From Dimorphilus gyrociliatus (Eukaryota; Animalia; Annelida): DNA of 64,000 nt. The translations under genes and the position numbers were made by a program. Below are positions 2,719 to 25,135 of the stretch, piece by piece. The DNA lies in contig CAJFCJ010000015.1 in NCBI GenBank assembly GCA_904063045.1, positions 930,001 to 994,000 on the forward strand. The letters are read 5' to 3'. The notes under the pieces are model-generated. The model was not told the DNA's origin. It did not search any database and was given only the letters and a program-made list of their open reading frames with translations. Every line of letters starts with the position of its first letter. The stretch's first letter is position 1.

Positions 2719-3411
2719 CTAATGTCTGTAAACAGCAACAGGACAATGAGCGTGATGCAGAACATAATCGCTAACCGAACCGAAAATGGTTCTTCGAACC
2801 GTTCCCATTCCCCTGGTTCCCATGACAAGCAAAGTAGCTTCGACTTCTTGCGCAGCCTTTACGATTGCTTCTGCTGGTTTACCACCATGGTTAACTGTTA
2901 CCCATTTTCCTGGAAGTCCAGCCTCTTTTAAACGTTGACTGTAGTCGTGTTCTAGTTGTTTTGAGGCAGCATTTTCCTTCTGGTACAAATTTTGCCAAAC
3001 TCCAGGGGAAAAGCTCATACTACCAGCACCTGTTTAGATAACTTTATGTGAAAATTGAGAATTATCTCTGCTCTTTAAATGTTCCTATTTCTCTGTCCAC
3101 GTTTTATATATATATTTTCGATGAGTAGCACAGTAAAAAATTGGAAGAGATAAGAGTTAAAAGTGAATAAAACTAAAAGAGGAAACCTTACTTGACATGG
3201 CCAAGCTTTCGATCTCTGGTGCGTGTAATAGGAATATGTTATTCCCTGCCCTGTGGATATGGTTCACGTACCCTTTAAACAAAAATAAACATTAGTGATT
3301 TCAACACATTTTCAACTCGAATAACTTCATCAAATAATAAATAGACTTACACGCAAATGCATCAGCAGCTTGTTCACTAGCATCAACACAGATGACTACA
3401 TTTTCCGACAT
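2719..3411 (-). CDS. Universal stress protein (USP-C)
   Basis: Three exons: MSENVVICVDASEQAADAFAW / YVNHIHRAGNNIFLLHAPE / ...GKPAEAIVKAAQEVEATLLVMGTRGMGTVRRTIFGSVSDYVLHHAHCPVAVYRH*. Confidence 0.93.
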
Positions 3412-6538: not shown

Positions 6539-9369
6539 ATGGAAGATTTATGTGCAGTTTGTTCAAATAGGCTGGAAGAAAATCGTAAATATTAAATACT
6601 GTCTTGTGTAAATATCTTGAAACGGTCTTTTTCCTATCCAGAGAATGTTGTACCCTTATATGATACAAATGGTGAAAAGCTAGAGGCTTGCAAATGCCTG
6701 GAAGAAATACTCAATCTCCCACCGGGAACCCATCACTCATCTAATAAAGTATGCGAAATATGCTTTACTCAAATTAAAGATGCATATAAAGCTAGGGAGA
6801 ATATTGCAAATATGTATCAAAAATCCAAAGATAGTGCTGATATTGAAACGCTCTCGACAAGTTCTGTTATAGTACAAGAAGGAGATTTAATTGATATGGA
6901 AGAAGATTCTCGGGATATGATTGATATAGTTGTCGTTGAAGAGGAAGAAGATATGCATCTTGCCAGCGACGATAATGAGGACGGGAAGAGATTTAGGAAA
7001 GAAATTATTCACGAGTGGTCCTCTGATCCCAATCATCAAGTAACGAATCTTTGGAAATCAAAGAAAGTTCGAACGAAGCGATCAGCTTACACAAAGTTCA
7101 TTCAAAAATTAAAGAATTCTGTCTACAAATGTTTAAACTGCACGGAAATATTTCATAAACAAACTATTGCCTTTACCCACGTAATTTATTGCCTAAATGG
7201 CCCTAAATTCGGCTGTTCGTGTGGAGTCCTTTTAAGGAACCATTCTAATGTGAATGTTCACTTAGGAGAATGTGGAGTTAATCCTGCATTTATTTGTGAA
7301 ATTTGCAAGAAGTATTTTGCTACGGAAGCTCGTTTAACAGCCCACATGGTTATACATACAGGTTTGTTAAGTACACTTATAATACAAACATTACATTCAT
7401 TGGTTTTTATTCTATTTTTAATTAACAGTAGTAAAAGTAAAATGTAATTTAGCAAAAATAGCAAGATTTTAATATCGTCTGCTTAATATAAAAAAGAAAT
7501 TCATTATATTTTTCAGAAAACAAGCCCTTTAAATGTTCACACTGTGACAGCTCTTTTCGACATAAATCTACTCTAGATTATCACGAGAGGAGGCATAATG
7601 GTGATCAACCGTACAAGTGCCAATTTTGCTCCGAAAATTTTAGTCGACCTAATTTCTATATTGATCACATGAGACTTTATCATCCTGATGATATGCCATA
7701 CGAGTGTAAAGACTGCGGTTTAAAGTTTATGAAACAATTTGCTCTGGATAAACATTTCAATCAAAAAGAATGCGCTAGTGGGCGGAAGAAATTGGCTACT
7801 TTGGCTAGAAGAAGGGCTAAATTGGAAAGAATGAAAAACATTTCAGAGAAGGAAATGAAGAAAATTCAAAATAAGTAAATTTCAATTATTTGATTTATCT
7901 TTTCAATGCTAAACAAGGTTAATTATCCATTTTTAGAATGAAGTATGATAGAACGTATAGAAATAGAAGAAAACAAATTGTAGAAGCTAAAAAGTCCAAG
8001 ACGGAAGCAACCGAGGAAGTAGAGGAATTCAATGTCATCGAATTAATTAGTGAAAAAACGCTATATAGAATTAAAATAGCTCCGGGATTCGTTAAAAAGT
8101 ATTTCGCTGATCTTGAGAGTCAATTTAATGATGTTGTTCAAAAGGAATGTGTTATTGTTAAAACGGAAGATGGTAATGAATTATTCATTCAATCGTCTAA
8201 ATTAGATGTGAAAGCTGATAAACTGGAGTCTTATGACGCCCCGAAAGCAAATGTTAAATATTTAGATACGGAAGTTGAAGGGAACATTTTAGAAATTGGA
8301 ACAATTTCTGAGCATTTATATTCGGAAGTGGTAAGCATGGAAGTTTCCTTATCGAGAGCCGTTTTTTGTGAAATCTGTAGAAAAACCTTATTCAAGTAAG
8401 TTGAATGATTTTTCATTTTAAAGGAAGAAAAATTAAAGCTCATAGTTTAATGAATATTTTGAATTATTCTTTATCTTGAACAGAGTCCATCGACTGAACT
8501 CTCATTACGATGAATGTCATAAAGGAGAAGAAAGTGATTTTTCGAAGACAGTATTTTTTCTGGAGAAGTTAGGAAGAGAGGACGATTTACAGTTTTCTTG
8601 TTCTGTTTGTCCGGCGAAATTTGCGAACGAGTCTCTTTGCAAAGCACACATCTCATACGTCCACAATTGCTCATTATGCTCGAAATCATTTAAAAGACGT
8701 GCGGAGCTCATTCGGCACAAGGCTACTCATAGCGGATTAAACAAGAAATATCCTTGCGATCTATGTGGAAGCTTATTCAGCGATAAAAATTACTTAGAAG
8801 TTCACGCCCGAAAGCATACGAGAGAAGAGCCTTTTTCTTGTGAATTTTGTAATAAGCGATTTAAGGATCCAAATCACTTTAAATATCATATTCGTAGTCA
8901 TACCGAGCAACCAAGCAAAACGTGCAATTATTGCGGCAAAGGGTTCTATAAAGATTCTCTACTTAAAAGACATTTACTGACTCATACGGGTAAACACGCT
9001 TTTGTTTGCACAAGATGCAAGAAAGGATTCTCGGAGACTGGCCTTAAGTACCATTTATTACATTCAAAAAGTGACTGTGCTATAGCTGTAGCCAAAACAG
9101 CCGAAATAAATTCTATGAAATCTTCGACACTAGTGCAAGATATAGTCGGAAGGCCAACTGTTTCATACGATCAGGATGGAGGGGCAACTGTTACAATACA
9201 TAGACCATCGTTTGACGAAGTTTTGAATCAAAACCAGCCCATGTTATCCTCGTCACCAAATGACATTGTTGACCAAAATTCCTCATATCTACTAGGAAGA
9301 GTCGTTCAAACTGACCAGGGAGCACAACTCGTCGTTGTTAATGAAAAAGCAGATAAACTAACAGAGTAA
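6539..9369 (+). CDS. Multi-C2H2 zinc-finger protein (about 13 fingers in two blocks) with an N-terminal ZAD-like C4 domain
   Basis: Approximate exons 6539-6586, 6642-7361, 7517-7873, 7938-8394 and 8483-9369. Many CxxC...HxxxH fingers, some with TGxKP-like linkers. The N-terminus has CAVC...VCEICFTQIKDAYKAR. Confidence 0.88.
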
Positions 9370-17268: not shown

Positions 17269-19591
17269 TTAAGTAAGATTCTTCAGTAAAGCTCGCCTTT
17301 TAGGACTTTCTTCAAACATGGCCTCTACCAGCTGTCTTACTTCGTTTGCATTCAAGTGTAACGCTAACGGGCCTTTACCAGAAGCCCATCTGTCCTCGAT
17401 ATCTGCCAACTTGGCGTCCAACAACCTAACAATTTCATTCAGACGCAACCAGCTGGAAACGTGATCGTGGCAAACGACTTCGACAGCATTCGAAGCCTCT
17501 TCGATAAAAAACAGCTGAGGGCAAGTTTGTAAGAAGGAACAAAGCTTTATAGTTAGTGTCGAGCAGTCTTGTAACGAATATTCCGTAATTGTTAACAAAC
17601 AAGTAGTTATGTGCAGAACAACAAATTGAACTAACGATCCTAGACCTCTAAAGAAAGTATTTATCGGTAAACTATCGCGCCAAACTGTTGAGACGTTATG
17701 TAATCTCAGGTGAGTATTTGAAAGAGATTTACTAATACGTTCATCATCGTCGGCAGCGCAAACAAAACCCTTTGCTTCCATTAAACAAGTTGTTAATATT
17801 CCTTTTTCGTATTCTATGTAATCGGCAAAAAATTGATTTCCCAACTTTCGAATCCGGCTGATTACGTCCGCCATACCGTTATATTGTTTCATTCTTTTTA
17901 ATAATACAGCGTCCATAATCAATAGATGATGAGCGAAATACATACAATTATTATTATGCAACGCCGCCAGGTAAGCGTCGGATACAATAAAATTTTTAGG
18001 CAAAAAATCGCAAACACTCTCCGCCAGATGACGTATCGTTACAGCTAAATTTGTAGCTCCATCCCTACTATTCTCGTCAGCTTGTTTTAGTATGCTATAA
18101 GATAAGATCACTATATGTCTGATAGCTATGCTAACGTGACACTTTGGGAGCTTTAAGGCATGTGCAACTCTTCTTTTATTTTCACTGACAAAAACTTCGA
18201 GGTCCTTCGTTGGTTTAGTGAGCTTCCACGGTTCCTCTGGCCCTTTCCATCCTTCAACAAAGCTATGTGGTCTTCGAATTTGACTTTTGGGTTTAATTGT
18301 ACTTTCAATTAGAGTTAGATCGTCGAAACAGGAGAAATCCTTTCCGAGTGGCTGTTCAGCGGTAACCTGAACCGTTTTTTTCATATCCTGAGCAAGTAAT
18401 TGATGAACTTTTCTTAAAACTTCCTGACTTCGGGCTTGAACGAATAACGACGAAACATTATTAAAATAATCTAACAAATTTTTCTTTCCTCTCTCTTCGT
18501 TATTTAACTTTAAAAAACCTAAAACATTCAGAGTGTTTTGAAATTTTTCCGCTTCCGATACTATTTGATCAAAAGTAGCCCAATCGCAAGTTTTTTCTGG
18601 CATTAAATGTCTAAGGCAATTATTAAACAACTCTTCAAACATTAAAGGACAAATATTATCTCCAAAGGCCTGAGTTAAAGGTTCTTGACCGATAGAGCAC
18701 CCTCTAAAAGGTCTATGAAGAAAGAAAAAAACTGTTTGTAAACTTTCTAGAACACTCCAAGCATTAGGAGCAGATGATGACCGATGACCGATTGATGATA
18801 ATCTCAAAACCATAGCACTTGGTTCATCTTCAACAACAACCTTCACTGATGAATCTGATACAATGGATTTTATAAAATAGTTAAGTAGTTTGTCGCTAAA
18901 TGTTTTTAGTCTCTTTTTGAGAAGATTACACTTATGCATTGTTTCAATGCAGTGAGCTATACAATCAGGAGTGGTTTTTTTTATATGGAGCGATGTGTTT
19001 TTTGTTTGTCGTTTAAATACTTTTGGATTTAAAGGGATTTTAAAACGAAAATATTCGTCCCATTTTTCACTTAGATTATAAAAAAGTTTTTCCCGAAGAA
19101 CGCAAGCTTCAGTTTGCAAAAGTTTTTTTGAGGCAACTTCAATCTCAGAATTTACTTCGATTTCTCCTAGATATTTCCTCGATTCATTTAATTTATCGTA
19201 AGCAAACGACCAATTATTGCTAGAAATAGCTGTATCCAATTGACAAACCGATTCATGAGTTTGTAGTATAGAATCTAAAGTCGATAAAGTTTGATCGTGA
19301 GTCGATAATTGAGATTCGAGGCAAGAATCCGGTTCTCTTTCGCATTGTCTCTCTAATTCTTCAAACAATGGTCTCACTATTGAGAATAAATTAGGTATGA
19401 TGTTCTGAAATAGTTCCATTCCATCGTCCGATAACACAGAGCCATATTTCCTTTGAATCGCTGAGCAAATCGCGTTATGTAATTCTGTTACTTTTTCTGC
19501 CAAATGAAAAGCCTTTCCGGAAACAACACTCTCTGTTAAGCATGTTGTCATATCATCATCCAGATCCTCTTCTTCCGATAAATATTCTTTC
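17269..19591 (-). CDS. ZW10: Centromere/kinetochore protein ZW10 homologue (single large exon)
   Basis: Long ORF with ZW10-type motifs (LPKCHVS, AALHNNNCMYFAHHL, WLRLNEIVRLLDAKLADIEDRWASGKGPLALHLNANEVRQLVEAMFEESPKRRALL). The ZW10-like N-terminus MTTCLTES starts at 19551, 40 nt after an acceptor AG at 19592-19593. Confidence 0.9.
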
Positions 19592-19647
19592 CTATAAAGA
19601 AAAGTATAAAAAATATAAGCTAACATAAAATTAATTTCATATAAAAC

Positions 19648-22600
19648 TTACGTGGAAAAGTAACATTCAGATTCTGTGTCTGATAAACATATTGAAGCTG
19701 TTTTCTTTAAATATTCATCAGGAAGAGACCAATCGTAGCCGTCAATAACCTTTTCAAATAAAAACAGTAAAGATTATTTCCATATTAATAGCAAAATAAC
19801 TAAACAGCTCAGAACCTCAACTGTTACTTCTCGGCCTTCCAGGGAATCCGAAAATAATTTGCGTTTAGTAGGACATTCCTCCTCAGCATCTGGAGTGACG
19901 TCAAAGGCTGAACCTAAATCTAACCTAATTGACAAAAAATAATATTATTAAAACGAGCTTTAAATAGTAAATTGGGTATTTTTTTTTACTTGTATTCTGT
20001 AAGACTGCCTAAAGAGCTTGGTGTAGCTATATCATTATCGCTAGGTGTACTAATATCTAGGCCATTTAAAGAATCAGGACTTAATTCCTCTTTCTTATCG
20101 CCCTTTTTATCGTCTTTCTCTAATGTTTTCGTATTAATGTTTAATTGTTTTGGCCTATTGGACACTTGTAAGGGAAGCATAATCGTTTTGATCTCCTCTT
20201 CACTTAACATTGAGCTTTCAGACTCAGTAATACTTGCCAACTCCATAAGATTTCGCATATCCGTAATCTCTTGATCCACCATATTTCTTATATCATTCAT
20301 CTCTTGGGAAAAGATTTCGTGCTCAATTCGACGCTCTCTTTCTAATCTTGTCTAAATAGAGGAAATTGTTATTTTCTTATATAAATAAAAATAAGTCTAT
20401 CGCATAAGGTTGATAATTTAATAATCTTACTTGCTCCTGTTTAGCCTCCCTAACATGTTTTTGCCTCTCTTCTGATAGCCTCTTCCAAGTCTGTTCTTGT
20501 TTCATCATAACGTTTTCAGAATGTTCTAAGGCTTTCCTAGCCTCTTCTTCTACATTTGCGCTTAAACGTTTGACTTCTTCTCTAGCTTTCTTGGCACTCT
20601 CTCTTAAATTGACAAGCTCCTTCTTTTCCTCTTCAATCTCAGCTTTGAGCGCTTCCTGCTCTAATATTTTCGACAATCTATCCGCTTCGGATCTTATATG
20701 GTGTTCATCACTATCTCCCAGATCTTGTACACTTAAACAAGGGTTAGATGCAGAAAACGAACGATTGTTGTCGTTTCTGCAAATAAATTTAAAGATTTAT
20801 TTAACAAATGGCTAGAAATCATCGGTTAGATTAGCCTAATTTGTTAGGCAAAGTGCCTATTTGTCGTATCGTAATGTGTCTTTTATTCACGGTTTTTATT
20901 CAAATTAAAAATAAAAAGTATGCAGTTTTTACCCAAAAATGAGCTATAAAAACTAAATAACGCAATGTCAATTATTAAAGGAATTCTTTTTTTATGTATA
21001 GCTAATTACAATTTATGCATATAAATAAGCTATTCAAGATAATTGTTGTTTTATGATAAATTATCCTCTGATTCCTTTAATTATAGATAACATTCTCAAT
21101 TAAACATAATAAAAGTATTGTTATCTCTACTACTCTTTAAAAAGGGAAAAGTATTAATTAGATATTCTAGAAGATTAGAATTTACAGTTAACGAATAAAT
21201 ATAACTGAAAATAACCGATCCAATATTGTTTATCATTATTTAGACAGTACATAAAAGAGCAACTAGATAAATGTTTTATATTTACTTACTGTGATTCGCA
21301 GCCTGAATCTGGAATTGAAGGAGACGAAGTCCAGCTAAAATTTCTACTTATCAAAACATTCGAATTCTAATAATGGAAGAAAACAAAAAAATGGAAAAAT
21401 GAATGAATTTAATTTACTAATTCTTTTAAATAGTTATATGATATTGGAAAAAGTCAATTACGTTGCAATTCTCCTTTTGAGCCTCGGCTGGATTATTGAA
21501 TCTAAACATATGTTGACCAAACTGAATGATTGATCCTTTTAGGGAAAAAAATAATGATATCATTAACACTATAAATTTGCAGGGAAATTTCATCCAACCA
21601 TGGCAAACGGCCACGCAGCTTACAGCTCTTCGATTATTGATGAAAACTTTTGCCCCGTTTCTGGGCGATAACGTCACTCGACCGTCATCTTGAATTTCAA
21701 TATCGCAATGGAATTGCTCTATATCAGGACCATTTAGTGCTGTTTAATAATTTATTAAGCATTTGTAATAATTGGCTATCCAAATTCATAAATATATGTC
21801 TAACCTATATCAACATTATGTTGACCTTCATCTCTTCCAACGGTTGTTCGTTTCTTAGATAAATGAAAAATAAGTACAGTTCCTTCGCAATCATCTAAAC
21901 CAATAAAGTGGGGTTGTTCAGATTCAACTCTGATTCCACCACATTTTGACCGTTTCAAATCCAAAGCAGTTTCATCAAGAATACGAAATGTTTCCTCTTT
22001 CCAACGACCTTCCCACCTTTCGGTCAAAACTTTTACTCTAGCTTCATTTCTGTTGAGTCGTTCCTATAAAGTAATTTTAATTAGTATCATTAAGAAAAAA
22101 AAAGAAAAATTTTCACCTGATTTTCCAGGACATCTACAGGTGATCCAGTTTGAGCCAAGAGAGCCCTTAAACGATTATTCTCTTCCTTCAATTCTCTTAT
22201 AAGGCGCACGTTTGGATCCTAAAATAAAAAGTACCAACTATTAAGAGGGCAAAATCGAACAAGTAATTAGAATTAATATACTTCATTAATTATTGGTTGG
22301 TTAAGGATCTTTTTAGCACGGTGAGCATAGCGTAGAGTACTTAGACTCTCAGCGTAGCAGCAATCAGCAGGTGAAATAGCTAGTAATGAATTAAAGTTTA
22401 CTTAATAATAGTTATTTGTTTTTAATAGCGCCATTACTTACTGGCAATCATTACAGTATTCGAATTTCCGCCTATACTATCCTTTAGTAACCATGTAAGG
22501 ACGGAATCACGATAAGGTACGAAGACATTCTTTCGTACACTCGCAAACTTATCAGATAAATCAGCTAAAATTAAAGCAAGAAAACACAGCTATATAAACA

Positions 22601-24060
22601 AACAAAACGTAAACAATCAGAATTAATGAACAACTAACTAAATTTTATTAGGAGCGGTCAAGTAGACCTACTCTTAGGATTTATGTCTAAGAAATCTTTA
22701 CCTAAAGTCGATATAACGTTTCCCAAAGTAACTAGAGATTTATTGATACTTCCACCTTCCTTTAAACGCAGGCCACTCGTTCCAGAGACATCAGCACGCT
22801 CGCTAAAAACAAAACGTTTGTATTAAGAATATAGTTCAACACTGTCAACATTTGCCAACCTTCCAGCTAAATCAACTAGGTGAAGTTTACTATGAATCTC
22901 ACTTGGTATATCATCTTCCATTTTGGCCTGAATAGTTCATATATAGTTCAAAGAAAGGTAAAATAAAACGCAGAAAGAGCAAATAGTATTTACTTGTATA
23001 AACGATATGGTGAAAATTGCATGGGATCTGCTGCTTACATCGTTTAAAGCTGTTGAAGCTGTTGCTCTATTGTGCATTGTTGACGTAATAGATAATAAGG
23101 AAAATATATAAATTCAATATTGAACTAACCTTAGATCGTTACCCTTACGGATAAATTCTTCAACAGCTTCATAAGTAAATACACTATGTTTAGATAGGCC
23201 TTGTACGTATGGCCCGTCTTTTGGATGTTCTCTAACCCTCAGGGGCTTTGCATCTGAATCATAATCCCTCAGTAGGTCTCGAACTTTTTCGTTGTAAATT
23301 TCGCAATAACTGTAAGTATATTTATATTAAATATTAAAACTGCAAAACATCTTACAGACCTTATTTCGATTCTGTAAGAACTTTGCTCGTCGCTTAGCAT
23401 ATTGAATAGTTTTTGGCACATTCGAGGAGTTAGGCCTGCATTTTCTAATGATCCGGTCATTGTAAAAGTTTTCCCCGAACCCGTTTGACCATAAGAAAAC
23501 ACACAACCATTGTAACCTTGACATGCCGATTCGACTATTTCTTCACCTAAATCTTTAAAAATCTGTAAAAATAAAACCTCATCTGCTAGGTAAATGCCAA
23601 TAAAATAAAGACTATATAGTTTACTTTTTCTTGAGATGCAAAGTTTCTATTTTGCTTGTCAAATGAATTATATGAATAATCGTAAGTGAAGGTTTTATAT
23701 CGCTCTCTTCCCAATGTTCCCTCAATGGAATTTGGCCGAATCTACAAGGTTTGCGAGAAAATTAACAAAAATAAACGATTTAACATCTTGTGTATTCTCT
23801 TTCTATAATGCAGAATCCCTTAAGTGGAACGCATAGGCCTAGAGCTGTGCAGTTCAGAATACTCTCTCTTTTTTACTCACTTTGTTATTAATAATAGTTG
23901 TAGTATGTCCATCTTGTTCGATTATTGACTTTGAGTTTAATTCTATTTCACTGCCGGTGCAAAATCAATTTTAATAGGATAAACAAGGGAAAATGAAAAA
24001 TATCCATTCTTACCGTTGGCTGAAGGGTCGGCAGCGAACGGCCACCTTTACAGAGGACAT
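19648..24060 (-). CDS. KIF16B: Kinesin-3 KIF16B/Klp98A-like motor (motor, FHA, coiled coil; no PX domain seen)
   Basis: 19 hand-spliced exons: [37 protein letters not shown] (P-loop), [11 protein letters not shown] (switch I), LVDLAGSER (switch II), [35 protein letters not shown] ending [13 protein letters not shown], then a Glu/Lys-rich coiled coil. The 3' end is either TAA at 19648-19650 or splicing into ZW10. Confidence 0.88.
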
Positions 24061-24256
24061 ATCACCTTTTCCCTTCTTCTAGTTTTGAATTTCTTATAAA
24101 AATTCAATATATCATTGTCGAATCATTGATTTTTCTCCTCATCATAAGTTCTCTTTTGCCATATTGATCACGTGACTATTTTAACACTACGCCATCTATT
24201 GGTTTTCAAATAATTTATTTAAAGTAAAAACAAGCTAATAACTATATAAAAAATAA

Positions 24257-25135
24257 CTAATAAGGTGCAGGATAAGTAACAGATGATGGTCCAACAGAAT
24301 GTGGCCTACTAGCAACGAGAGAAGGAATAGGCGTTCCCTGAGGCTGTTCGTTTCTTGGGGGTGGCGGCGGAGGTGGTGATGGTGCCTCGGCTTTATTCTT
24401 TGCCATATACAAATCAAGGACTTGATGGCATATTTCTTCCATTAAAGGCATGGTCATATCAGGGACTAGAGCGCTCCACCATTTCGATTTGGGTCCAGAA
24501 GAAGATTTTTCAGCCCAATCAGTTATAGTAAACTTGCTTAACCTACACGCTAAGTACATGAGACTCACAGCGATGACTTCTGGCTCCCATTGAACACTAA
24601 GTGTTGTACAAAGAGAATCATTTATAAATGTCCAACACATTTGTACCATTTTCTCAATTTTTGCTTTATCAGCCTTAAGAAGTTTAGCAAATTTGATAAG
24701 AAAAGAGTAAGGATGTTTGACACTTAAATCAAACTTTAGAGTTTGTAGAAGAATTTGCTCTAGAGTCATTAGTTCTTCTCTTGAGTCTTCTCCTAGCAAA
24801 CATTCATATTGGGTACTGGCAAGAACTTTTTTTGCCTTATGAATAACATCCTTACATTTTTTCGGCGTTTCTTCAACTTTTCCTGCTAAAAGAATGCAAG
24901 TTGCTCCCATGACATGACGATCAAATTGTCTAAAAGACCGCAGCATATAAAAACGATGAAAATAAACTGTAGCAGTTGCACATGTATCATACGGAAGTCC
25001 CAAAGCATTTCCCGTGTCAAGAATAAATCTAGCACCTTCTCTCCTATACCGAGTTTCTGTTTCAGAATCTATTCCATTTAGTCTGGAAGGGGTATTCTGT
25101 CGAACGTCTTTTCGATCGTAGTACCAGCAAGGCAT
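24257..25135 (-). CDS. CCNK: Cyclin K
   Basis: Intronless [41 protein letters not shown]...YFHRFYM...[13 protein letters not shown] with a Pro-rich C-terminus. This is the cyclin K signature. Confidence 0.95.

Follow-up and report, generated by a model that had tools for sequence, protein, structure and literature searches.

A probable kinesin-3–ZW10 fusion gene conserved in the Dimorphilus lineage

In the genome of Dimorphilus gyrociliatus, the reading frame of a kinesin-3 motor continues across a canonical intron into ZW10, and a related lineage maintains the same open frame, the pattern expected of a cis-spliced fusion at the level of genomic sequence. We conclude that this is probably a real chimeric gene, conserved in and specific to the Dimorphilus lineage. 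The coding range occupies positions 17269..24060 on the minus strand of the window (the whole 64,000-nucleotide stretch of DNA analyzed here), a position confirmed in the public genome record. Its 20 exons encode a predicted protein of 1,656 aa, within the 1,600–1,700 aa estimated in a preliminary description of this DNA. The in-frame passage from minus-strand kinesin exons into ZW10 reported there recurs in the public protein (CAD5121935.1 / DgyrCDS10399), which maps exactly to the same 20 exons with GT-AG introns. The statement that no such fusion was known holds for the literature that we searched, in which the fused gene is not mentioned, but the predicted protein has been public in GenBank and UniProt since 2020. 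The supplements of the genome paper mention neither the gene nor ZW10, KIF16B or Zwilch (PMC7854359), and exact look-ups of the ZW10 open reading frame alone, from two possible starts, returned no match.

The kinesin side takes up 19 exons (24060-19652, minus strand). Exons 1–11 (22117..24060) encode the motor domain and neck (aa 1–394), with Pfam matches to Kinesin (PF00225, E=5.4e-107 across the full profile) and Kinesin_assoc (PF16183, 30.3 bits vs. a cut-off of 29.5). The nucleotide-binding motifs (P-loop, switch I and switch II) are intact, DLAGSE being among those found in both species, and dN/dS between D. gyrociliatus and its relative is 0.02 in the motor region. The closest solved motor structures are those of KIF1A and KIF13B. 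After the neck/CC1, exons 12–14 (21462..22063) encode a CC1-FHA region of the kinesin-3 type (PF00498 FHA, E=2.7e-9) that matches solved KIF1A, KIF13 and KIF1B structures. With both a motor domain and an FHA domain, the predicted upstream half is a member of the kinesin-3 family. The narrower label 'KIF16B-like' used previously stands as far as kinesin-3 membership is concerned, but not for the PX domain: Pfam found none at E<=0.1 in aa 395–900 or 780–1060, and the C-terminus is ZW10. The order of parts, from motor through Kinesin_assoc and FHA to a long charged helical stalk, is that of KIF16B; in contrast, KIF16B ends in PX, which binds PI3P, and here ZW10 stands where that membrane-binding tail would be. 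Loop 12, which precedes VFVPYRDS, has 12 residues of which only three are basic (read off the public protein, for comparison with a K-loop), and presumably resembles the loop-12/neck sequence of KIF16B, a similarity that we treat as a lead. Feature searches of the Atlas gave no clear answer on the kinesin-3 subfamily. From the sequence, the KIF16B label is plausible.

Downstream of these domains, exons 16–17 (19990..20776; exon 17, 20351-19990) encode a charged helical, coiled-coil-like stalk and a low-complexity tail, and are still coding as judged by a pN of about 0.09. Exon 18 had previously been placed at 19828-19924 (97 nt); the public protein corrects it to 19816..19924 (109 nt, donor GTTCTG), the frame staying open either way. 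In the relative, a clean GTGAGT occupies the donor spot of the 109-nt version. Exon 19 (19652..19749, 98 nt) is the last exon on the kinesin side and ends in TCC AC. The intron that follows (intron 19, 19592..19651) has exactly the features described before, namely a length of 60 nt, a GTAAGT donor and the acceptor CTTTATAG, with a TATAG end, and its phase (TCC AC|G AAA) joins exon 19 in frame to exon 20. Exon 20 starts at 19591 (G AAA GAA ...) and consists of an acidic linker and the complete ZW10 in one 2,323-nt exon; the kinesin part, by comparison, has 18 introns in 2.6 kb. The linker, KEYLSEEEDLDDD (19552..19591, G plus 13 codons), lies directly before the ZW10 Met at 19551. Peptides spanning the join of exons 19 and 20 are predicted to read ...CYFSTKEYLSEEEDL... 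and ...ECYFSTKEYLSEEEDL....

Retention of intron 19 would give an immediate stop, as previously pointed out (ACG TAA, 19650-19648; likewise GTAA gives TAA at 19988-19986). Because the unspliced frame is here the same frame, this ACG TAA is the only stop between the two halves in an unspliced D. gyrociliatus reading. The reported lack of a polyadenylation signal also holds, with neither AATAAA nor ATTAAA in the D. gyrociliatus gap.

The ZW10 part is complete and intronless (17269..19551; 760 aa plus stop, TAA at 17271-17269) and begins at the ancestral ZW10 Met, which is thus retained inside the fused frame. Three Pfam ZW10 domains score over their gathering scores (PF20665 Zw10_middle, 87 bits; PF20666 ZW10_C, 56; PF22766 ZW10_C2, 100). 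Zw10_N (PF06248) gave no match at E<=0.01; by eye, MTTCLTESVVSG resembles the MxSFVTEVLAxxG consensus of other ZW10s. In an AF2 model of this part (mean pLDDT 76), the first helix begins at the ZW10 Met. A fold search with the model returned human ZW10 in RZZ as the best match (7qpg_W, E=1.1e-32), followed by Dsl1 (8eki_E). By its middle and C-terminal domains and its modeled fold, the downstream half is a ZW10 with a predicted CATCHR fold.

ZW10 belongs to two assemblies, the RZZ complex of kinetochores and the NRZ/Dsl1 tether of the ER. It normally acts as a free subunit, bringing dynein to kinetochores and tethering vesicles at the ER. The other ZW10s that we examined (molluscs, a nemertean, deuterostomes and others) all stand alone at about 750 aa. 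In Tubulanus, the 2.3-kb CDS is spread over 3.5 kb, and the 10 kb on either side of ZW10 contain no kinesin in Tubulanus or in Lymnaea. A Helobdella protein of 2,000 aa with a ZW10 C-terminus was considered as an older fusion and rejected, as it has no kinesin domain.

The preliminary description had proposed looking for the same junction in related species. In one relative, a syntenic contig keeps the fused frame and every splice site: all 20 exons and all 19 GT-AG introns are present, the fused frame is open over 1,649 aa, and the ZW10 part is 90% identical in protein. Only one of the 33 amino acids of exon 19 differs between the species. Intron 19 of the relative (GTAATA...TTTCAG) cannot be aligned with that of D. 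gyrociliatus and is 76 rather than 60 nt long; thus, the fused frame is kept only when the intron is spliced out. It is the least conserved intron of the gene (z=-0.1; 19 introns compared). By contrast, the two species share 84% identity over the 200 nt that precede the kinesin ATG. The gap thus holds no conserved promoter or 3'-end element. The TAA after ACG is conserved in both species, and the relative's gap contains an AATAAA, so that kinesin-only and ZW10-only products are possible; motor-less isoforms are possible as well.

The substitution pattern in the linker indicates coding-type constraint on this stretch, which precedes the ZW10 Met. An open stretch of 13 codons is by itself within chance, but the way in which the two species differ over it is beyond chance. 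Eight bases differ, distributed 1/0/7 over the three codon positions; seven of the eight differences, including the first-position one, are synonymous and the other replaces D with E (P about 1e-4). Synonymous differences elsewhere amount to 0.57–0.78 per site. This agrees with the earlier proposal that the linker is coding sequence rather than UTR, on the scale of a comparison that covers one relative and eight substitutions and in which RNA-level constraint on a GA-rich motif could also produce an apparent third-position bias. In both species, exon 18, exon 19 and the linker contain no in-frame ATG, and the relative's unspliced frame reaches a TAA (7754-7756 of its contig) before any ATG. 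Thus, the linker can be translated only from exon 17 or from farther upstream.

On the RNA side, runs X1 and X3–X5 (the type of X3–X5 being only a guess, 'DNA?') hold 0.64 and 0.77 of the words sampled from two stretches. An exon-only transcript would be expected to give 0.646 and 0.797, and one that keeps intron 19 would give 0.660 and 0.860. These shares, which do not tell which words are absent, are consistent with an exon-only transcript in which introns 17–19 are not retained. No RNA-derived open reading frame across the junction was found in the protein collection (queried with 130 aa from the acceptor and with protein region 760–960), and JGI metagenome contigs held no match to the spliced junction or to a conserved word from the 5' end of ZW10.

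That all exons lie on one mRNA, and hence that motor and ZW10 share one molecule, is what we infer from these data, which leaves some room for a real splice whose main ZW10-bearing product lacks the motor, with the full motor–ZW10 protein minor or absent. An internal promoter, for example in intron 15, would then give an mRNA from around exon 16–17. Translation from a Met at aa 668–751 would extend ZW10 at its N-terminus by about 150–230 aa of stalk/tail, and retention of intron 17 or 19, each with an immediate TAA, would end the kinesin. Intron 15 (20777..21289) suits such a role: at 513 nt it is eight times as long as a typical intron and the sole long one of the gene (its counterpart in the relative has 608 nt), and its first ~55 nt and last ~120 nt are conserved in the alignment with the relative. 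These ends may be a regulatory element or an internal promoter; Rfam found no RNA family in 19500–21400, the conserved ends included. Open chromatin in D. gyrociliatus lies preferentially in unusually long introns (PMC7854359). Intron 17, moreover, has the same length in both species and is 82% conserved, and the final in-frame Met codons ahead of the ZW10 Met are confined to exons 16–17. Set against this, the public annotation, which gave PASA transcript assemblies a weight of 10 (PMC7854359), places all 20 exons in one gene, the word shares fit exon-only content, and a single unit is more economical. We regard a predominantly motor-less product as rather unlikely.

In compact genomes, neighboring genes are easily merged by mistake into one model, and this was counted against the fusion, as were the kept ancestral Met and the stand-alone state of all other ZW10s examined. 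Two separate genes would imply that the kinesin stops at TAA 19650-19648, that ZW10 transcription begins independently, in or close to the 60-nt gap, with translation from Met 19551, and that the GT...AG arose by chance. The 760-aa frame is indeed a full-length ZW10, the ACG-TAA is shared by both species, with AATAAA in the relative's gap, and tiny intergenic spacers occur in this genome (for example, about 196 nt separate the kinesin ATG from the cyclin gene). Such a pair of genes would nevertheless leave the linker evolving as coding sequence in the ZW10 frame with no ATG from which to start. The gap would be the least conserved of 19 introns next to an 84% identical promoter spacer upstream of the kinesin, its donor, acceptor and phase would have been kept despite a 16-nt change in length, and the word shares argue against its presence in RNA; a false merger is therefore quite improbable. 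We give almost no credence to the trans-spliced alternative put forward previously, a dicistronic operon whose downstream ZW10 would receive a spliced leader by trans-splicing at AG 19593-19592. The same-strand arrangement, with a 60-nt gap ending in a strong acceptor, does recall nematode or Oikopleura operons, but a leader would need to bring an ATG in the correct phase to explain the linker constraint. The alternative also conflicts with the genome study of D. gyrociliatus, whose authors detected no spliced leaders, saw no leader sequence over-represented in 5' UTRs, described a canonical promoter profile and argued against operons (PMC7854359). A flatworm-like leader ending in AUG was rejected as a source of the start codon, the species having no leader and the phase being unfit. 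The fusion first proposed in the preliminary description is thus supported by conservation in a second lineage, by constraint on the linker and by an identical public gene model.

In the fusion that we favor, one 20-exon transcription unit would encode a kinesin-3 motor, neck, FHA, stalk, disordered stretch and complete ZW10. The charged helical stalk, about 125 residues or more, probably dimerizes the protein, and the stretch of about 85–100 residues that follows (the end of exon 17, exons 18–19 and the linker) is predicted to be disordered while conserved in sequence. The final intron would make the join. The stop codon at which the kinesin would otherwise terminate is part of its donor, AC|GTAAGT, and 40 nt separate its acceptor from the old ZW10 start codon downstream, so that splicing would remove both stop and spacer and former upstream sequence would be read through into ZW10. 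The product may act as a plus-end-directed motor with ZW10 as its cargo-binding tail, with the partners of ZW10 (ROD/Zwilch/Spindly-dynein or RINT1/NAG-SNAREs) carried or anchored on microtubules. More tentatively, the fused gene could be the sole ZW10 of Dimorphilus, in which case the RZZ tasks at the kinetochore corona and in dynein recruitment, and the NRZ task of tethering between ER and Golgi, would all be served by a ZW10 fixed to a dimeric plus-end kinesin-3; this further step we find possible but doubtful.

We know of no organism described as having a motor built into a tether or corona subunit. With the conserved covalent link between ZW10 and a kinesin-3, if real, evolution would have experimented with coupling transport of opposite polarity, or with a self-delivered tether, and would have provided a ready-made construct for asking what motor-bound ZW10 does. 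The gene would also be a clean example of genome compaction creating a new gene, with a stop codon within a splice donor and upstream sequence turned into a linker. At least some 'merged' models in this compact genome may thus be real, and codon-position patterns in a close relative can separate them from artefacts.

The fusion may have originated from an intronless ZW10 copy inserted behind the kinesin, or from compact-genome neighbors joined when a donor arose at the stop. Neither a poly(A) remnant (no A-tract after the stop) nor a target-site duplication was seen at ZW10, and intronless genes are common in the D. gyrociliatus genome, also close to this locus. TRIM5-CypA of owl monkey and jingwei of Drosophila are chimeric genes that captured a complete open reading frame as a new 3' exon. 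As in those genes, an intronless coding unit is spliced here to upstream host exons, the old start has become an internal Met, and former upstream sequence a translated linker; unlike in those genes, a read-through join of neighbors is equally possible and the partners are a motor and a tether subunit. Read-through ('conjoined') models likewise involve same-strand neighbors and an intron that removes the upstream stop and spacer, but they are mostly rare transcripts or annotation errors under no selection, whereas the present join is conserved between two lineages, together with its phase and the linker codons.

Precedent for the architecture comes from myosin V, whose globular tail domain, with a CATCHR-like fold, serves as a cargo-binding tail. 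In the fold search, the ZW10 model matched myosin V/Myo2 cargo-binding domains at ranks 23, 35, 37, 40 and 45 (TM by target 0.43–0.56), so a motor with a CATCHR-type helical cargo-adaptor tail would not be new. Myosin V, however, works on actin and its tail is an ancient, dedicated domain, whereas the present protein would combine a microtubule motor with a whole, recognizable ZW10, a protein that serves separate complexes as a subunit in all other organisms examined. Opposite motors are coupled non-covalently by RZZ-Spindly-dynein at kinetochores and by KIF1C-HOOK3-dynein on cargo. Complexes that contain ZW10 recruit dynein/dynactin. Like the assemblies just named, the kinesin–ZW10 protein would bring the machinery for plus-end and for minus-end transport together on a single scaffold, but where they use an adaptor, the link here would be a peptide bond.

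The minus-strand kinesin gene, identified by strand reading and all-frame translation, has multiple exons and begins with an ATG at 24060. Its last kinesin-side exon ends at 19652 (...TCC AC) and is followed by a 60-nt segment between GTAAGT and CTTTATAG (19651-19592), after which a reading frame stays open without interruption from 19591 to a TAA at 17271-17269. When spliced, the junction reads AC|G AAA GAA ..., encoding T-KEYLSEEEDLDDD-M. When unspliced, ACG TAA terminates the kinesin frame, and because the intervening segment spans just 60 nt, this TAA is the sole stop between the kinesin and ZW10 parts. The in-frame path from kinesin exons through a 60-nt intron into ZW10, as set out in the preliminary description, was thus recovered. 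It also proved to be an existing public gene model: CAD5121935.1 (1,656 aa) fits the window exactly, with 20 exons from 24060 to 17269 and 19 GT-AG introns. The one exon that had been misplaced, at 19828-19924, is exon 18 in this mapping and covers 19816-19924 (109 nt). As had been argued, the TAA at the donor (19650-19648) is weak evidence, weighing neither for nor against a join, since 10 of the 19 donors in the gene begin with GTAA.

The public protein emerged from the 90% cluster of a 758-aa ORF on a Logan contig, itself the only close relative found in a large protein collection; the cluster includes CAD5121935.1 as 'DgyrCDS10399 [Dimorphilus gyrociliatus]', placed on CAJFCJ010000015.1 of GCA_904063045.1. 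EvidenceModeler produced the public annotation and gave PASA transcript assemblies a weight of 10, so an assembled transcript probably underlies the 20-exon model. In the literature searched, we found no mention of the accession, of ZW10 together with Dimorphilus, or of a kinesin-ZW10 fusion.

The same junction was looked for in a related lineage, on a syntenic 24-kb Logan contig (L001, run SRR23372228) with the gene order cyclin, kinesin, ZW10, 237-aa ORF, ELAPOR-like gene, Kelch gene, zinc-finger gene. The two loci differ at 0.57-0.78 synonymous changes per site, with dN/dS of 0.02 in the motor and 0.04 in ZW10; identity is 90% for the ZW10 part at the protein level and about 82% for the junction DNA. 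All 20 exons can be aligned, with AG and GT at each boundary, and the joined coding sequence is open for 1,649 aa. The last intron in L001 is 76 nt long (donor GTAATA, acceptor TTTCAG), and this 16-nt difference means that the frame is preserved only if the intron is removed; without splicing, the L001 frame reaches a TAA (7754-7756) ahead of any ATG. SRR23372228 and SRR23372216 (contig L002) belong to one 2023 project and hold genomic contigs of a close D. gyrociliatus relative, providing a second genome for testing, through codon-position patterns, other gene models that look doubtful in this compact genome.

Between the species, the 13 linker codons ahead of ZW10 (19591-19552) differ at eight bases, distributed 1/0/7 over first, second and third codon positions. 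Seven of the eight changes are synonymous, including the first-position change (CTG/TTG), and one is D→E; at least seven synonymous changes would arise with P of about 1e-4 under random placement with the same transition/transversion mix. Read in the other two frames, 1/8 and 0/8 changes are synonymous. This substitution pattern argues for a translated linker, in keeping with the suggestion that the acidic stretch is coding sequence rather than UTR. Exon 18, exon 19 and the linker all lack an in-frame ATG in both species; the closest such codons occur in exons 16-17, so translation must enter from the kinesin side. Within exon 19 a single residue of 33 differs between the species, hinting at a short binding motif and not a mere spacer.

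RNA content was gauged from the share of sampled words found in sequencing runs. For 17269-24060 and 18900-20360, the predicted shares were 0.646 and 0.797 with exons only, 0.660 and 0.860 with intron 19 kept, and 1.0 for genomic DNA. Run X1 (2017) held 0.64 of the words from the first stretch, and runs X1 and X3-X5 held 0.77 of those from the second; run X2, probably the source run, held 1.00 of the second. At 38-42 million letters each, runs X3-X5 (2020) fall short of what a 74-Mb genome would need. Since the observed 0.64 and 0.77 follow the intron content of each stretch, they fit RNA better than diverged DNA and suggest that both halves are expressed with the 60 nt missing, word shares being a measure of content and not of the join. 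In a coral metatranscriptome from 2024 (X6), 16% of the sampled words from 18900-20360 were present, pointing to RNA of D. gyrociliatus or a near-identical worm in the coral sample; this run may offer independent reads over the fused gene.

Taken together, we consider it likely that the full kinesin-ZW10 fusion is a real product. There is a modest chance that the locus yields mostly a ZW10 isoform lacking the motor. Shorter isoforms in general may arise by transcription beginning within the long intron 15, with its conserved ends, or by intron 17 or intron 19 being retained. That the public model falsely merges two genes seems improbable. A gap carrying a promoter or 3'-end signal would be expected to be conserved like the 200-nt stretch just before the kinesin ATG (24061-24260), where identity with the relative reaches 84%; among the 19 introns, conservation is lowest in intron 19, whose 57% identity equals that of shuffled controls (z=-0.1). 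The trans-spliced dicistron raised earlier, in which ZW10 would be a downstream gene supplied with a spliced leader, now has almost no probability: over-represented leader sequences were sought in D. gyrociliatus 5' UTRs in the genome paper and none were found (PMC7854359), which removes this reading unless that paper is wrong.

Several non-coding stretches of the locus stand out. Intron 15 (20777-21289; L001 5957-6564) stands alone in its length, with 513 nt in D. gyrociliatus and 608 nt in the relative, the other introns of the fused gene measuring 50-139 nt. Conservation is confined to its first ~55 nt and its last ~120 nt, leaving out the middle; it has no Rfam match and could serve as a regulatory element or internal promoter, or contain an exon missing from the annotation. 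Intron 17 (19925-19989; L001 7324-7388) is 65 nt in both species and begins GTAAAAAAAAATA, so that retention gives an immediate in-frame TAA. For an intron this short, 82% identity is unusually high; introns 1 and 3 reach comparable values (83-84%). Upstream, an intronless cyclin-T-like gene (292 aa, minus strand) ends ~196 nt before the kinesin ATG (2805-3000 of the locus in the public genome record), and the conserved 24061-24260 stretch includes an AATAAA; this 3' end and the kinesin promoter would therefore share ~200 nt.

The ORF from Met 19551 encodes 760 aa with Zw10_middle, ZW10_C and ZW10_C2 all above Pfam cut-offs. It can be aligned over its whole length with free-standing ZW10 proteins, all ~740-780 aa, from scallop, nemertean, limpets, Lymnaea, Saccoglossus, amphioxus and mammals. 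By eye, MTTCLTESVVSG agrees with their N-terminal MxSFVTEVLAxxG, indicating that Met 19551 is in all likelihood the ancestral ZW10 start and that the linker lies upstream of it. In an AlphaFold2 model of aa 800-1656 with 36 ZW10 homologues (mean pLDDT 76), the first helix starts at this Met; the 98 residues before it have pLDDT <50, but at zero alignment depth. Between the middle and C-terminal domains, ~60 residues (aa 1299-1360, ~17980-18165) also fall below 50 and are likely a flexible insert or loop.

Among the best 150 ZW10 relatives, the one long protein is a 2,000-aa Helobdella robusta model (T1EX14), with ZW10_C and ZW10_C2 at its C-terminus and ~1,500 preceding residues without a Pfam domain. 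The absence of a kinesin domain rules it out as a kinesin-ZW10 fusion; this leech entry is a further merged model or else an extended form of ZW10 from a second annelid. ZW10 has no kinesin neighbour within 10 kb in either Tubulanus or Lymnaea. Within these data, the fusion thus appears restricted to the Dimorphilus lineage. Its ZW10 part has no introns in 2.3 kb, versus 18 introns in 2.6 kb of the kinesin part. The gene may equally have arisen by capture of a ZW10 retrocopy or by read-through between two adjacent genes as the genome compacted: nemertean ZW10 contains introns, as a retrocopy origin of the intronless Dimorphilus copy would predict, but intronless genes are common around the locus and no A-tract is left. 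The TAA within the donor AC|GTAAGT probably once terminated the kinesin.

Finally, the fusion can be compared with known motors and tails. The N-terminal 883 aa contain a complete kinesin motor (E=5e-107) whose P-loop and switch motifs are intact, a Kinesin_assoc domain and an FHA domain; the closest solved motors are KIF1A, KIF13B and KIF14, and the closest solved CC1-FHA structures KIF1A, KIF13 and KIF1B. The domain and structure-sequence searches covered residues 1-391 and those from 395 onward. These features class the kinesin half as a kinesin-3, as first described, but the likeness to KIF16B is less secure: the PX domain, a defining feature of KIF16B, had no match in a domain search of this half. 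The product would be a dimeric plus-end motor with ZW10 as its tail, joined through a flexible yet conserved segment. Residues 851-896 (19652-19749 and 19552-19591), just ahead of ZW10, are near-invariant across species yet predicted to be disordered; their acidic tract, with an aromatic pair after it, may resemble FFAT-type ER-targeting motifs. In the fold search, the modelled tail comes closest to human ZW10 of the RZZ complex (7qpg_W, E=1e-32), followed by Dsl1, and the cargo-binding tails of myosin V are also among the matches.
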